DNA of 63,939 bases, counting the filler, from Lenisia limosa (Eukaryota; Protista; Breviatea), in the NCBI GenBank assembly GCA_001655205.1. It is 10 parts of 10 records of this genome, joined end to end, with 100 filler letters (N's around TTAATTAATTAA, not from the genome) between each part and the next. Parts side by side here need not be neighbours in the genome. Positions count along the whole stretch, not along the records: positions 24,357 to 33,682 come from LPNZ01003350.1; 9 more parts are not named here. One strand, given 5' to 3'. Both the position numbers and the translations under genes were made by a program. The first letter of the stretch is position 1, and every line of letters starts with the position of its first letter. Shown in pieces: positions 24,313 to 33,781 of the stretch. Under the pieces are notes generated by a model. That model had not been told where the DNA came from, ran no database searches, and saw only the letters and a list, made by a program, of their open reading frames with translations.

Positions 24313-24530
24313 NNNNNNNNNNNNNNNNNNNNNNNNNNNNNNNNNNNNNNNNNNNNTCCCCCAGGTTTATCATATTGACCCCTGTCATTTTTGTGGCCCG
24401 CCCGGCACCAGGGTCATGACCCATGTCATTTCCCAATTCCCCAAATAAGCCATTTTTTATACTGGTCCAAGGTCCTCTATATGGGGGGGTCAGTCCTGGC
24501 TCAAATCTAGGTTGAATCTGGGAGTTTGGG

Positions 24531-27500
24531 ATGCCTCGCGAAATAGTTAGTGTTCATGTTGGGCAATGTGGAAGTCAAAGTTTTTTTTCTCTCCAATAAT
24601 ATAGTTGGAGTATCATTTTGGGATGCTTTATTAAATGAATTCAATATATCTCCTGATGGGTCTATTCATGACTCTGAAAAAGGATTTGATGAAGTTTTTT
24701 TTTCTGCAGTTTGTTTTTATTTGTAAATTGTCAAATGAGAAGCAGGTGTTGGCAAGATCCATTTTCTTAGATTTAGAGCCAAGAGTTCTGCAATCAATTC
24801 AAAAAGGTCCATTTAGGCAATTGTTTAAATCTGAGAATTATTTTACTGGGGATAGTGGAGGTGGAGCTGGTAACGTATGGGCAAATGGGTTTTTCTCTGG
24901 CCAACAGTCTGAAGAAATTATTTTAGAAATGCTTCAGAGAGAGGTTGAGTCTGCTGATTCAATGGACGGTTTCTTCCTTTCACATTCAGTTGCAGGTGGC
25001 ACAGGGTCTGGATTGGTTTATTGGTCTCTGTTATCCAAGGGTTCGAAAGTGTTAGAGGTGATATCCTCCTATTTTGCTAAATCTGCTGTTTTGGCAAATT
25101 CTGTTTTCCCAAATCATGGTAATTGATGAATACTCATCAGAAAATTTTTCTGATGTTGTGGTACAGCCTTATAATTCGGTACTCACTTTAAGAAGATTGA
25201 TTGAGCACACTGATGCTGTTGTATGCTTTTTAATGAATTAACTCTCAAGTGTATTCTTGATAACCAGTCTCTTAACAAATTGGCCTTGGAAAAAAATGGA
25301 GGGCATACTCCAACATTTGAAGACGTTAACTCTATAGTTTGCTCAACTCTTTTACTATTTACTAGATTATGAAGGGGGGGGGGGTTTTGACGAGAGAAAT
25401 AAAATACAGTAGAAAAGTATTTTATCTTTTTTTTTGAAAAAATATGTATTGAATCAAAGACAAAGGAAACAAAATCAAATTAGGACCAAATGTCTGGGGA
25501 AGCATCTTGAAGCGTGTTTGGTCCTCTTCCTCTTCGAGAAGATACAGGTAGCGAACACTATGTCGAGACCACCCTTGGACGAACAAGGGGAGGAAGTTCG
25601 TCAATTACAGAGAAGTGGGTGTTATTTTGGTGTTGTGGACCAGCGTGTACAATGAACATATTATGTATCTTTATATTTATATATGATATACTAAACCTAT
25701 CACATTTCAAATTAATACTATGTGGTAATAGCTTGGAATGGTACTGATAGACTGCATATCTGGGGGTGAAATAAAAAAGTTGTAGAAGCAGAAGTGTGTT
25801 TTAACACTTTTATTTCAATACTGATGTGCATTCAAAATATTAAACCATAACATACTTATTGAGTTTGTTAACTCGTAATAACAAATACTGCATTTAGTCC
25901 TGCCTTATTTTAGCCAAAAAATTCAAACTATTGAGCATATTTATGAAGCTCAAAAACGAAGGCTATTCATAATTCAATACTTTGAAGAATCACGAACGTT
26001 CTTGTGACATTTCGTAGGACGCAAAAATATCACTTTCAGCGTGGGTTGACTAACTGAGAAATCCACAATGGTCAGGGTTGATTACATTAGAGGCACCAGA
26101 AAGAGTCACAGACCAAGATCAGCCGATCTGGTGTACAGACTTCTCCTCCACGAGGATTGGGGGTTCTTGTTCGCTCTCTGGTACTTTCTTTTCCGCCCCT
26201 TTTCCCCCGAGGTTGTCTAGTTTACATATCAACGTACTCGAATTGATTGCAGTACGTGTGCCAACAACTTGTCAACCCGGATTTCGGCAAAAAATAACAT
26301 CACTTCTCGCAGGATGTGATAATCGTTCGCCATCTCATGGTTCGATAAAGGAGGCGCTTCTCCGAAGATTGAGATGTTATTGTAAACAAGATTTGCAGAT
26401 CATAAATCTTGGTGACATCCCACTGGGGATAACAAGTTTGCTGATGCAGCTAGCCGCAACGATGTCACTGCATTGTCTGAGCTTAAAAAGGGTTGATGTG
26501 CCTAAAGCTCTTTGGCCAATTTTGATCTGAAGGTTTTGTTTGTTCATATTTGATTCTGCTGACCGAAATGCGTGATTACATTATTCATATAATCTAGATA
26601 TTGTTATTAGCCTATTACTATTAGACTATGCTGCTAAGCTTGATGTGCAACGTCAAAAGATTAAAAGAATGTGTGTTAGAAATACGACAATGCAAACTAA
26701 TGGCACGGCTATGAAGACTTATAAAGAGATGGGCCATGATATATTATATATGCGGCCATTCTGGTTTTTTTCGCTAATTCTGATTTTTTTCTTGTTTATG
26801 TTTTGNNNNNNNNNNNNNNNNNNNNNNNNNNNNNNNNNNNNNNNNNNNNNNNNNNNNNNNNNNNNNNNNNNNNNNNNNNNNNNNNNNNNNNNNNNNNNNN
26901 NNNNNNNGAAGTCAAGATAATTTTACTGTGCGTTAAATAGACATTGAAATGACGTTGCGACCGAAGTCGTGACGTCTACTATCAAGATATACAACGTTAC
27001 CCTCCCTGGTTTTTTCTAGTGACATGAGAAAGCCCAAAACACTCTCGTAAAATGGATTAAGGCCCATCAAACCCTCGAAAGCCCCGAAGCTATAGGCAAC
27101 GAAATCGCCGATAAACTCGCTTAAAGAGAGGCCTCCAGACCGCTTTCCCAATTCCTCCATTTCTTAGTTTCCCTCATAGCTCAATTTGTTACTTATTAGA
27201 GAAGAACTCCCGCTCGAACCCCCCGCCAACAGAACCCCAGACACCCAAACTCTTCTCGGGAACTTCCATAAAGCCCGACTAACAAACCTTGCGTCATCCT
27301 CTGCATTGTAGAACCCCACATTCGCCTGGCCTCCGTGAATTCACTCCAGGTTCGGAATGTAACAACAAAAATTCCTCCAATCAGCTCTCGAACAATTCAG
27401 GCTCCACGTAATCTCAAACACTCTGTCCACACGCTCGCGGTTCGCACAATTTGAAAGAACAAGCCCACTATGCACCTCACCCAGAATCGTTCCATCATCA

Positions 27501-28808
27501 TGTCGCTTGAATGCCTTCACCTCGGCCTTGTTTGAATAACGTGAGAATTAGACGGACTGAGGGGGTCTATTCCTAGGGTATCCAGTCATTCTTGCTAACT
27601 GTCGTTGAAACAAACTATGGTAATATACGGTTGATTTTAGCACCAAACAACCCTAATGGGTCTTACCTAGTCCCTTGCAAAGAATTTTAACGCCGGCGTT
27701 TGAATAACGTGAGAATTAGACTTTAGCCACCGCGTTTACCTTACCCATGACTACGACATCCTTTAGCCCCATTGAGATCATTACCTTAGTGATTGGTACT
27801 TCTCCAGTGTNNNNNNNNNNNNNNNNNNNNNNNNNNNNNNNNNNNNNNNNNNNNNNNNNNNNNNNNNNNNNNNNNNNNNAAAAACAAAGAAAGTACTATT
27901 TAAAGAATTTTAAGTGAGCCAAACATGGGTTTGAATGATAGAAGCAATATTTTCTCTCTTTCCTCGATGACTAAACGGCCGAGAAGAACTCGCGAGGTAG
28001 GTATTCCGATTTAACTTATACTCCGCCCACAATATACTCCAAAAACCATTCAAAATTCACTAAAATGTTATATCATATATTCTGATGTGTACCAGTTTTT
28101 ATTGAACTTTTTTTAGATTTCTTCAATATTGGCGTCAGTATCATTCCAGTTCAGTCAAAATTGCTTCATGAATTATGACCTGAAATGTTTCATTGCATCT
28201 CTTGTTCCAGTTCCATCCTCTCATTTTCTTTTACCAAGTATATCTTTTGTTTCCAGAGTTTGTTGTTTCTTTTTAATTTGCGTCAGACCTCTCTTACTGA
28301 GACTATTAGGCGATTAGTTCAACCAAGGAACATTTTGAGTTCTTTCTCCACAAGATCAGGAGTTTTTGTATCCTTTTGTGCAATTGTCAGTGGCATTATT
28401 AATGGAATGCAGTTAAACCAGTCTCTTCAGGTTTTGTTTTCCTTTTTATTTGAATTTAAAGGAAAGGAAAGCCATTCAATCAATTCCATGGGGACCTCTA
28501 TCAATTCAACTTGGCTGTTCTCCTTTTAGGAACAACTTTTCTGTCCTTTTAGCAAATCATACTTCTACCCACTTGGTATTTTTTAAAAGAAATTATTTTT
28601 TGGGGTTCTCTAATATTATCCAACAATTTGATAAATTGTGGAGTAGAGGCGCGTTTTTAGAACAGTATAAACAAAACTCTTTGTTTGGGGAAGATTTATT
28701 TGATTTTGAACAATCAAGGTAATTTTTTATTGTTGATTCTGAGATACTGTTCTTGGAGTTTTGGAAGAGTATAAAGAGCAAGAGTCTCCGAATTTTCTGA
28801 ATAAATAA
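24531..28808 (+). CDS. TUBG: Divergent gamma-tubulin, 11 exons
   Basis: MPREIVSVHVGQCGSQIG, DLEPRV, GAGNVWANG, HSVAGGTGSGLG, DVVVQPYNS, MNYDL, IPWGP, LLANHTS, FDKLWSRGAFLEQY. Introns: 24580-24604, 24709-24730, 25016-25039, 25119-25140, 25221-25249, 25337-28116, 28258-28280, 28431-28452, 28576-28602, 28719-28741. Stop ends at 28808. Confidence 0.92.
26030..26460 (+). mobile_element. DIRS-like RNase H relic inside gamma-tubulin intron 6
   Basis: WCTDFSSTRIGG, HINVLELIAV, LAGCDN and NKFADAASR. Homologous to 16690-16960. Confidence 0.8.
26990..27140 (+). mobile_element. RNase H relic, probably from a non-LTR retrotransposon, inside gamma-tubulin intron 6
   Basis: VKWIKAHQTLESPEAIGNEIADKLA* matches the RNase H C-terminal 'WvkaH...GNE.AD.LA' motif. 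In-frame stops present. Confidence 0.65.
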
Positions 28809-31800
28809 TTAATAGATGAGACTATGAGACTATAATAAAAATTTGTCATAGATATTGGCCTTAGATATGACTCTCGGTCAGAAGCAGTAACAAGAGGATC
28901 AAATTAAGGTTCATGGAAAACAATGTCGTATTTCAAAATACTTCAAAGTAAATACACTGAAAAAGCACTTTTTTTACTTTGTACAATTAAGCTGGGTGGT
29001 CTTAGATGCCAGCTCGGATTCTAAGACGTATTTTCGATGATTTTCGAGAGGGTTTCTCACCAGGAGCGTCACATCCCCGGCGTCACGCCTTCCTGCCGTT
29101 CTCACCCGCTCGTTTTGTCTTATTTTTCTTTTTAATAGCATACCTTAGTTTCCGATTTGGAAGAGGCTGGCTTATCTTCATAGTGAGGTTAAGGTTTTTT
29201 GGTGCCCTCGCCGAAACTAAAACATCATTAGTGTGAATTTGAACGCTAAAAAATTAAGCAAGATTGTAAAATGATTGACAAAAGGTTGTACAGGCATACA
29301 TAAACGTTTGTTTAAAAGTAGAAACATGAAGGCATTAGATTGCGTGCGGGGAGTCCTTGTCATTCACAAGGTCGCCTTCTCCACTCTTCGCGTGCAGGAA
29401 CTACGCAATGCCCTTATACCGATGCTGTCCACAAGGGATAGATTGAAGGGATGGTATTCTTGAACCACAAAAAAAAAAGCCTGGCCGGGTTAGAAAATAG
29501 AAAGAAAACAGTAAATGTAAGATTTAGAGAAGGGCTTGAAGGACGGGTGCGGAAGTCTTGGAAACCCAATGGTGGACCAATTCTCGGACGGAGAGGATAA
29601 CTGGAGGCTTGGGCCGACAAGGAACGCAGCAGGCATGGCGCAAATTCTTGAGGGCCATGTCGACTTGTTGTTGCACTTGTAGCGCTGAAATGCTTGTTGT
29701 CATACCCAGAACGTAAAAGTTAACAGCGGTTTTTGTGGTCGGTCATTAATCCCCGGTAAACTTCTGCTTGTCGGCAATTTCGGCTCCGTTGGCCGAGTGG
29801 TGGCGAATCTAAGAAGGTCAAGTGAATGTGTGTAGTTTATTACTAGGTCCAGAATCAGGAGCATAATATCATTAATGAAGAAGTGTTTCTGAAAACGAAA
29901 AGAAAACCAGCTAAAATCAACATGGGTACAGGACTTCTTCTTGGCCATCCAGACAACAACGTGGTTCTTGGGGTCTTCAGTATCGACAAAGACGTGAAGC
30001 TGTTGCCGAGTTGTGAAGGAATGGAGCTGTGGCAGTTAAATAAAAGGAAAAACGACAAGAACCAGTTTGTTGCAGATAAGTCCAACTAACCTCGGTGGAA
30101 CTTCTGTCAAGCCGATAGACAGCAAGCAAAAATGTTGGCACGGACAAGTTTTTGGGAGAGACCTGTCGACAAGAGTTTCAATCAACAAGTGAGACGGGCG
30201 GCCTTCGATGGACTCAAAAGTTCTTAATTGGCGCGCGCTAACTGCTTTAAGTCGTTGATTTGGCACCTTTCATTGTCGAGCTCCCACAGGAAATCATTGG
30301 TATGTGATTCGATATACTTCGCTTATTCTCCTAAACTGCCACTTGCTCCAAGATGTGTAATCATATAATTCAATCTTTTCAAAATGATATTGAACAATTT
30401 ATTCGAAGAGTGCAGTTTGAATATTGATGTTGAGCTGTTATTTCTCAATTTGCAAAGATGCGGGGTGAATATAGTATATCAGTTTTTGTCATCTTTTCCA
30501 GGAGTCTAAGGAAGATAATGAATATACACCATTAGTCTTCTTCTCAAAAAAACTGAGTAAAGGGGAATGAACTGAATCGATTTTTTTAAGAGACTATTCT
30601 AGAATTTTCTAGAATTTTAATTTTGTTTTTGAAAATCCCCCAAAAACGGTCTAAAAGTCTTCAAAAAAGCTCAATAATTGGAGGTTTTCCTGAAATAAGC
30701 TATGAAATGCACAAATGAAGCGCTCGCGTTTTCGGTAGTCCTCGTGTTTTTCACCCCATAAACTTGTTTATATTTCTACCTCTAGGTCGTACCTTTGCTG
30801 GAGAGTTAAGGACAACGTTTTCTCTGCTATAAAGTTAGAATTTGAAGCACACCCAGACTTAAGATACATTCACTGGAAAGATGCTCGGAAGCCAACCCTT
30901 TTAGCCGTTGTGGTGTTACTGGTTGGGCGGCGAGAACGTCGTGAGCGGGCATGTCAGCTGTTACACTTGGTGTAGAGGCGCTACAGAGTAAGGAAAGAGG
31001 GATTACCTTTTTTTTTACAGTGGGCTGGGGGGATACAAGAAGATGTGTACATTTAATGTCTAACCCACAAAAGGTGATGATTGGACATCAAGATCTGAGC
31101 CTTGCGGCAGTGACCAGAAGACTGTGAGGAAAGAAAGCCTTCACAGCATCCAACAGTTTTCCAAGAGTGCACCAAAATTCGGTCCAGACCAGGGTAAATG
31201 ACCTGACACAGGCATAACGGTAGCAATGGTTAATGACAGACGAAGGAAACAAGCAATCAACGAACCATATCCATGAAATCATAAATTAGGATGAATTAGG
31301 ATACTAAAATACTATAAAAAAGAAAGAGAAGAGCAGAAGATAGAAGAAGATATGTCTGTGGCAAAGTCTTACTTGTAAAGCCGCTGAGCTGCTCTAAGCC
31401 TTGGTTTGACATGTTGAGCAAACCCTCAACACAGATTCAAGCTGTGATCCCTTCAGTGACATCAAAGGACAGTACCTTTTTCCAAGAGAGTCTTGCCTTG
31501 GATGGATGACGAAATGCGGTGGGAAAGGTCGGGAAAGCGGTCAGTGGCCAGTGCAATAGGGAAAGAATTCCGTAAAAGTGGCTCTTGTACCTTTTTTTTT
31601 GTGAGGATAAAAAGAAGCAAGATAGGTGTACAAGTTGGAAACTACACAACAGATATATTTCATCAGGAACAAACCCCCACAAAAACCATTATCTTTTTTA
31701 AGCTACCAATCATACTGATATACTGACGAAGCGACAAAGATACAGGAAATAAAAGGACTGAAGGGGAGAACATAACGGAATGATCACAGAAGAGGTTTGA

Positions 31801-32116
31801 TCACAGTGTTGTGCTCTGTTTTGATGAACTAAGAAACTAAAAAAACTAAATAAAAAAGGCACCAATTAAAGAAAAAACTGGAGAAAAAGAAGGAGGAGGT
31901 GAAGGAGCTGGAAGGAGTAAACTTGCAGCAAACTTGCAATTCCTGTAATGCAAGTTTATATCCATTTTGCATTTTTTGGACTAGTAGGTAGTCAGGGTTG
32001 GGAGAGGGTGAGGACTGTGAGGACAGCAGGAACTCCGGTGGAGGAATTTACTACTANNNNNNNNNNNNNNNNNNNNNNNNNNNNNNNNNNNNNNNNNNNN
32101 NNNNNNNNNNNNNNNN

Positions 32117-32783
32117 TAAAGTTCGATACCAAAGTTGTGTTCTTATTTCTGCTCCTAATGTTTTTAAATGTACTTTACGTCATTCAAAAGAAATAGTTGT
32201 TTTGAAAATCTCACAGCGTTCAAAGTTATTTTCACTATTTATTTGGCAGTCAAACTTTCTACCTATAATTAGCGAAATTAGTTGGCTGCCAGTGGAACAG
32301 TATCACTATTGGACTGAAAAACCATATTTGTTCCTTGAAATGGAGTTAGGGTTATCATTCCCTGAATCAGTCTTTTTGGATGGGTTTTTCCCGTCATTTT
32401 TTCAGAGCCTACTCTTGTCAGGTCTACAAATAGAGACGTTTGGTATTCAACATCATGATATTAAACCGACAAATATCCTTATTTCTTCAAACAATGAAAT
32501 TATCTTAGGAGACTATGATTTTGCCTCAATGAGTGTTGAAATTGGAGACAGCAGGTATGCTCCTTTTGAAAAAACAAAAGCAATGGAATATGACAAGTTC
32601 TCCACAGCGTTAGGTTCTGTAGTATTGCATTTTGGAAGAGCTTCTCCAAGTTTTAAGAAATTTTATTGGTTTTTATTTTCAATAATTAGTAATAATTCAT
32701 ATCGGTTCCACACATTGGAACTACTTTTTAGTATTATTTCTTTATGTCTTGACAATGAACAATCTGTGTTGGATATGATATAA
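32117..32783 (+). CDS. Divergent protein kinase (5' end in gap), no introns seen
   Basis: IVVLKI, YLFLEME, HHDIKPTNILIS and ILGDYDFAS (DFG changed to DYD). Confidence 0.75.
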
Positions 32784-33781
32784 CTCTGCGGTTGTCAATA
32801 ATTCGCCGTGTGGCTGGGTTTTTATGTGTTTTTCTTTACTTTTTCTAATTCACTACGAGAAAGTTTTTTGATGGTGCCACCCTTTTTGAAAAGGAGCTTG
32901 AAACTACTACTACAACAAGGAGTTTCTTTAATGTAGTTAAAGTTGGTTGTTGTCGTATGCAAGAGAAAAGCCGTAAAAGAACTAGTAGCGAGAGGTCTTA
33001 CACAAGACTTACATTCGCCTATGTCAGATGCCAAACTGCTTTCAAGGTTTTATCACCAACGTTGGTTGGGTCAAATAACTTCTGAGCCATGATTGATGTT
33101 ATATTGGGCACATTGAAAGTTCTTAAACCTAAATGAAATAAATGGTATTTGACAGGTGAGAGATATACTAAGGCTGCTTTTGATGTCAAAGAATTCTTCA
33201 GAATTAAAGATTTTGTCTTAAGATTTTGCTTTCGATGTAGTAAAAACCTGTTCGATGTTCACTAGCCGGAAAGCTTTCCATTATAACAATAAAAACCTTT
33301 TTCTTCTCCCACTCTCCTCCTCTTTTAAATATTCGTTAAATATAATGAAAAAGAAAGAATTACTTTACTGATGGCAACGAACTTGGTTGCACATGCGGTC
33401 GGAGGAGCGCGTTGAAAGCCTCGAAGGGCATACAGAAAAGCCTGAGGAACTGGGGCATATCCTTAACATTGACACTGGTGTCACCTCAAGGCTAAGATGC
33501 TTGCCGCCAAGGAGTTAGGCATTGAGTTCAACGCACCCGAGAGAGTGAGGCGGCGGGCGGGGGTATTTTGCACGTTTAATCTATAGTAGATATATCTATA
33601 TGATATAATACTCTACATAAAGAGAGAAAAAGTGGGGCGGCGGCGGAGGGAGGGGGTATATCATACATGTATAATATATTGCNNNNNNNNNNNNNNNNNN
33701 NNNNNNNNNNNNNNNNNNNNNNNNNNTTAATTAATTAANNNNNNNNNNNNNNNNNNNNNNNNNNNNNNNNNNNNNNNNNNN

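Follow-up and report, generated by a model that had tools for sequence, protein, structure and literature searches.

The window that was analysed is a 63,939-nucleotide stretch of DNA from the breviate Lenisia limosa (GCA_001655205.1), composed of 10 parts from 10 records of this genome. On the piece of the window between 24357 and 33682 (LPNZ01003350.1), a divergent gamma-tubulin gene was found on the plus strand, and the following features were assigned to it.

24531–28808, plus strand: divergent gamma-tubulin gene, with 11 exons, 10 introns and 424 codons plus TAA
24531 (ATG; protein start MPREIVSVHVGQCG) and 28806–28808 (TAA), plus strand: ends of the gene, on the piece 24357–33682
24580–24604, plus strand: intron 1, 25 nt, GT..AG, giving GQCGSQIG; top of the scan
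24709–24730, plus strand: intron 2, 22 nt, GT..TG; top of the scan and gap-free against the profile
25016–25039, plus strand: intron 3, 24 nt, GT..AG, in frame; top of the scan
25119–25140, plus strand: intron 4, 22 nt, GT..AG; no more than 0.2 bits from the best placement
25221–25249, plus strand: intron 5, 29 nt, GT..AG; placed by the scan
25337–28116, plus strand: intron 6, 2780 nt in the window with two N gaps, GT..AG; boundaries placed by the scan
28258–28286, plus strand: intron 7, tentatively 29 nt, GT..AG
28431–28452, plus strand: intron 8, 22 nt, GT..TG; top of the scan
28576–28602, plus strand: intron 9, 27 nt, GT..TG, 89% A+T; within 2.6 bits of the scan top
28719–28741, plus strand: intron 10, 23 nt (gtaattttttattgttgattctg), GT..TG; directly adjoined by the AG at 28742–28743
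28742–28808, plus strand: last exon, (R)DTVLGVLEEYKEQESPNFLNK plus TAA

The nature of the gene was examined with a profile made of 22 full-length gamma-tubulins, taken from an exhaustive protein search. The spliced model scored 459.8 bits against this profile, and profile positions 1–440 of 443 were aligned end to end, with gaps only in three loops. The motifs GQCGSQIG, AGGTGSG, LLANHTS and EEY are present in the model, exon pieces matched gamma-tubulin chains in PDB (exons 9–10 at E 5e-9), and PF00091 (Pfam) is on record for the called ORF. The exhaustive protein search with the largest exon gave tubulins at about 43–52% identity and none closer, apart from the genomic ORF P0001. Given the PDB matches and this level of identity at best, the predicted protein is a real but fast-evolving gamma-tubulin and, judged from its sequence, a member of this family. 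The preliminary description of this DNA had taken the gene for gamma-tubulin and the intron at 28719 for its last one; both assignments hold, the profile match being full-length and the intron being the tenth of ten. The end of the gene is compact, as the poly(A) signal AATAAA at 28800–28805 is formed by the last two codons (AAT AAA) before the TAA.

For the placement of introns, every in-frame excision was scored at each junction, at any start position and with any length that preserves the phase. All 10 introns begin with GT; nine are short, between 22 and 29 nt, and one is 2.8 kb long. As a control, the canonical GT–AG form was regained at introns 1, 3, 4, 5 and 6, either at the top of the scan or no more than 2 bits below it. 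Hand-built ends CA, TA or AT, which had been considered for introns 1 and 2, were ruled out by the exhaustive scan. Once the TG sites are used, the exons of the whole model contain neither stop nor frameshift. Intron 3 is itself free of stop codons and ORF callers translate through it (P0001 has VYWSLLSK in its product); its excision raises the score against the profile by 15 bits. At intron 7, an in-frame TG at 28279–28280 gives an intron of 23 nt, which adds RQ to the protein and scores 2.2 bits above the AG form.

The long intron 6 includes stop-free ORFs at 26078–26530 (plus strand) and 26933–27520 (minus strand) together with homopolymer runs of G and C. Short segments of it recur on other contigs, and no Pfam match was detected within it. 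This intron looks like an inserted repeat or the remains of a transposon. Its two N gaps are spanned by an ENA contig with 192 and 72 real bases, and since this contig fills both gaps, the gene halves on either side do belong together. When further contigs of the assembly were sought via the repeat ORF, the same contig only was returned.

Exon 10 (...FDFEQSR) ends with gaa caa tca ag; next comes g taa, and the unspliced frame is closed by the TAA at 28720–28722, as had been read earlier (TCA AGG TAA). Removal of 25 nt from the GT at 28719 to the AG ending at 28743 gave SRYCSWSFGRV*; the tail given earlier for this AG was thereby reproduced, and the C-terminal helix was lost. Removal of 23 nt from the same GT to the TG ending at 28741 gave SRDTVLGVLEEYKEQESPNFLNK*, in agreement with the conserved last helix proposed by the preliminary description. 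This TG-spliced tail gained 18.1 bits against the gamma-tubulin profile and aligned without gap to the profile consensus desrevveelieeYeaaeeeeyle. The gain was compared with that of 1000 shuffled tails: in 500 the residues were shuffled, and 500 were translated without a stop from shuffled DNA. None of these scored as high, the maximum being 11.6 bits and the mean gain 2–3 bits. The 21-residue tail alone, too short as a query, found no match in PDB. The peptides predicted for the TG-spliced form are DTVLGVLEEYK and one that spans THLGFSNIIQQFDK.

At intron 10, excisions of 17–35 nt were enumerated. The best protein was obtained, with identical sequence, by three of them, 28718–28740 (GG..CT), 28719–28741 (GT..TG) and 28720–28742 (TA..GA), and a GT start is found only in 28719–28741. 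The GT start of canonical introns is thus present and the AG end is not: the sole excision that starts with GT and yields the conserved protein ends with TG. Since frame 0 is shut by TGA at 28734–28736 and again at 28740–28742, the frame of the helix is not open before 28743. Downstream of intron 10, no AG of the right phase was detected in the enumeration of in-frame deletions. As to other donors, the sole upstream GT in phase 1 (tgg a/gt) was rejected, as its use would remove the conserved AFLEQY block. An excision with GG..AG ends from 28718 to 28743 stays in frame (...EQSNTVLG...) and scores 7.1 bits below the TG form. The earlier claim that no canonical rescue exists is borne out, as no GT–AG combination reached the helix frame in the full enumeration. 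A ciliate code and Euplotes-type +1 frameshifting at AGG TAA were also considered and rejected: exons read with the standard code are stop-free, two TGA precede 28743, and a +1 shift at this site lands in the wrong frame. Intron 10 starts with GTAATT, is rich in T and carries A at position 18.

In addition to intron 10, introns 2, 8 and 9 fitted best with a TG end, so that all four non-AG ends of the gene model carry the same dinucleotide. The frequency of TG in the gene is 0.076, and agreement of four out of four by chance would have a probability of about 3e-5, apart from a slight correction for the choice of placement. For intron 2, use of the AG up to 24739 makes an in-frame intron of 31 nt, 9 nt longer, drops SNE from the protein and scores 11.7 bits lower; for intron 8, use of the AG up to 28461 likewise makes an in-frame intron of 31 nt, again 9 nt longer, drops NLK and scores 9.2 bits lower. 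The support for TG at these two introns comes chiefly from gap penalties, and intron 2 is located in a region of variable length. For intron 9, no usable AG was found: one AG is internal at position 13–14, and the next gives an out-of-frame excision of 68 nt at a loss of 56 bits. Retention of intron 9 puts VFFKRNYFL into helix H11 and lowers the score by 10.8 bits. Cutting it at TG brings ANHTS and FDKL to the same spacing as in the profile. The sequence of intron 9 therefore argues for TG as its sole acceptor. Intron 10 had been put forward as the best single test case; the lack of a canonical rescue there stands, but intron 9 (28576–28602) is equally strict. A model of the whole gene in which only AG is allowed loses 49 bits and helix H12, and gains 9 residues in H11. 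The three further GT..TG introns in the same gene strengthen the TG reading of intron 10.

The short introns share a common geometry. The rule of taking the first AG or TG located no less than about 20 nt past the GT gives the boundaries of eight of the nine (introns 1–5 and 8–10); at intron 7, it picks the in-frame 23-nt form with TG. All nine carry A at position 17 or 18, for which the chance expectation is about 2e-4. This A is a candidate branch point and is only 4–12 nt apart from the 3′ end. Relative to the TG, AG is located at +2 nt in intron 10, at +9 in introns 2 and 8, and at −13 in intron 9. The TG contexts are cTG/a for intron 10, tTG/a for intron 8 and tTG/g for intron 9, and the context tTG/t of intron 2 follows the rule of a pyrimidine at −3 only.

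The letters of the DNA were compared with two further assemblies of public reads, both possibly made from the same reads as the assembly of the window. Over 27880–28900, a Logan contig built from a public run at depth 38 showed zero differences, and the ENA SPAdes contig NODE_1515 (coverage 42) was identical over all three non-N segments, with zero differences over 27880–30033. The preliminary description had named CTAG in place of CTG as the reading that would speak against it; in both assemblies the acceptor of intron 10 reads CTGAG, with CTG unchanged. RNA was examined in a run of poly(A) RNA from the same study. This run contained a share of 0.69 of the sampled 31-mers of 28118–28830, and nothing downstream of the gene. 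The share expected is 0.68 with all four introns removed, 0.66 with AG used at introns 8 and 10 and intron 9 removed, 0.74 with intron 9 retained and 1.0 for DNA, so that the observed 0.69 cannot separate the use of TG from that of AG. Because the RNA share is 0.69 as against 1.0 for DNA, the gamma-tubulin gene appears to be expressed, and the share is compatible with splicing of its transcript. A search of JGI metagenome contigs with a junction pattern of variable gap gave 0 matches, and among the transcript-derived proteins in protein collections none was found for exon 8 (63–200 aa) or exons 9–10.

The G+C content is about 0.31–0.48 when counted per 500 nt, and an Rfam scan of the piece gave no matches. 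An ORF at 31948–32783 (L002 2279–3091, minus strand of the locus) is stop-free for 270 codons once an N gap is filled. Its kinase-like product contains HHDIKPTN, and DYDFAS at the usual position of DFG, and matches Pfam Pkinase at E 2e-6, below the gathering score. As judged from these motifs, the predicted product is a very divergent protein kinase. Among the other genes of the piece on which the TG rule might be tested, this ORF was the only one found, and it is too divergent for placement of junctions.

TG is the sole non-AG dinucleotide known to act as a U2-type 3′ splice site, always near an AG (PMC2374985). In human, such TG sites were identified in 36 genes, each with an AG within 28 nt, as alternative and never as sole acceptors (Szafranski et al. 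2007; PMC2374985). Human mutations from AG to TG activate neighbouring AGs, and not the TG (PMC2374985). The four introns modelled here with TG ends resemble the human TG–AG tandems in that they start with GT, would end with TG and have an ordinary 5′ splice site, and also in the pyrimidine at −3, the mostly purine +1 and the presence of AG within 13 nt of all four TGs. They differ in length, being 22–27 nt, and in that intron 9 has no AG downstream. Human TG sites are rare, minor or alternative, and belong to introns of normal length; in contrast, TG would here be the sole productive site in 4 of the 10 introns of an essential gene.

Among animals, introns of 22–29 nt with a GT(a) donor are known only in dicyemids and myxobolid myxozoans (PMC13644364, PMC6543705, PMC6736024, PMC2222250). 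In such ultra-short introns, the spacing between A residues and the 5′ end is preserved; the splice logos of these animals contain AG only as the 3′ signal, TG being unmentioned (PMC13644364). The annotation pipelines behind these logos probably admit only canonical sites. The introns of the gamma-tubulin gene are similar to those of dicyemids and myxobolids with respect to the length of 22–29 nt, the GT(A/T/C) donors, the lack of a real polypyrimidine tract, the constant spacing between an A and the 5′ end, the fast-evolving proteins and the presence of some long introns bearing repeats. In its G+C content and its repeat-bearing intron, the sequence is also compatible with the values of Dicyema japonicum (36.7% G+C, 49% repeats). 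The difference is in the 3′ signal, reported as AG there and best fitted as TG in four introns here. With NAGNAG and other tandem acceptors, intron 10 shares the presence of two candidate sites a few bases apart, with the second step of splicing deciding between them; unlike NAGNAG, the spacing of 2 nt shifts the frame and the upstream site is not AG. U12-type introns also tolerate a non-AG 3′ dinucleotide and set the 3′ site by the distance from the branch point. Intron 10 was rejected as a U12-type intron: its 5′ end GTAATTTT (GTAATT) is not (A/G)TATCCTT and no branch box like TCCTTAAC is contained in the 23 nt. It is also far below the known sizes of U12-type introns.

From the protein frame and the recurrence along the gene, TG is probably a functional 3′ splice site at this locus, possibly with some use of AG. 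We infer that the spliceosome joins 28718 to 28742. Intron 10 would then be a genuine ultra-short U2-type intron, of which the productive 3′ site is the TG at 28740–28741 and not the AG that ends 2 nt later, and introns 2, 8 and 9 would behave in the same way. The branch adenosine may be located at a fixed distance, about 17–18 nt, from the 5′ end of these 22–29 nt introns, and the second catalytic step may take the first A/T–G dinucleotide a few bases downstream of the branch A, such that the 3′ end would be set by geometry and not by the identity of the base at −2. As a wider and more tentative proposal, to which we give somewhat less than an even chance, the 3′ rule may have been relaxed from AG to (A/T)G throughout the genome, ultra-short introns constitutively using the first AG or TG past a branch A at about 17–18 nt.

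The most serious alternative, improbable as it is, assumes a spliceosome that accepts AG only. The mRNA would then be joined from 28718 to 28744 and the protein would end with ...FDFEQSRYCSWSFGRV, devoid of H12; the helix-like frame would be left over from a CAG-to-CTG mutation of recent date, either in a strain-specific allele or in a gene copy that is redundant or decaying. An AG such as the one located 2 nt downstream is preferred by every known spliceosome, and the shift of human AG-to-TG mutants to neighbouring AGs (PMC2374985) agrees with this view, as does the tail of the AG product, which is open for 11 codons. CTG is one base from CAG, so that a recent mutation is conceivable for intron 10. 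For the whole gene, however, four independent A-to-T changes at −2 would be needed, in introns 2, 8, 9 and 10, without any exon being disabled; intron 9 would be left without any acceptor, the gene appears to be expressed, and H12 matches better than would be expected of a decaying relic. Slightly less probable still is the use of both sites as a TG–AG tandem, in which the functional protein would come from the TG form and the AG form would be an unproductive side product. The adjacent positions of TG and AG in intron 10 are in line with the human TG sites, which are always alternative with AG within 28 nt, but intron 9, with no reachable downstream AG, would have to use TG as its sole site.

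Two other explanations are far less probable. A donor shifted by one base would produce a GG..AG intron of 26 nt (28718–28743) and the sequence ...FDFEQSNTVLGVLEEYK..., in frame and with the AG kept. The deficit of 7.1 bits relative to the TG form, the destruction of the conserved SR(D/E) motif and the neglect of the good GTAAT donor all oppose this, and intron 9 would stay unexplained, so that we consider it very unlikely. The lowest probability of all is given to an error of assembly or sequencing, the true acceptor being CAG or CTAG. Three assemblies that agree may all come from one read set, which leaves room for such an error; against it, zero differences were found in the Logan (depth 38) and SPAdes (coverage 42) contigs and the site is outside of any homopolymer. 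As the same fault would be needed at four non-homopolymer acceptors, a sequence error is not credible.

Few signals of eukaryotic gene expression vary as little as the AG that closes U2-type introns, and to our knowledge a TG acceptor is known only as a rare and always alternative site of vertebrates. If TG is obligatory in several introns of an essential gene, recognition of the base at −2 would be dispensable when the geometry fixes the 3′ end, and Lenisia limosa would offer a natural system for the choice of 3′ sites at the second catalytic step. Gene models with ultra-short introns would then be systematically truncated, or would carry false small deletions, wherever AG is demanded. Under a rule relaxed throughout the genome, TG would close a large share of introns, as it would 4 of the 10 in this gene, and annotations that admit AG only would mis-model many genes.
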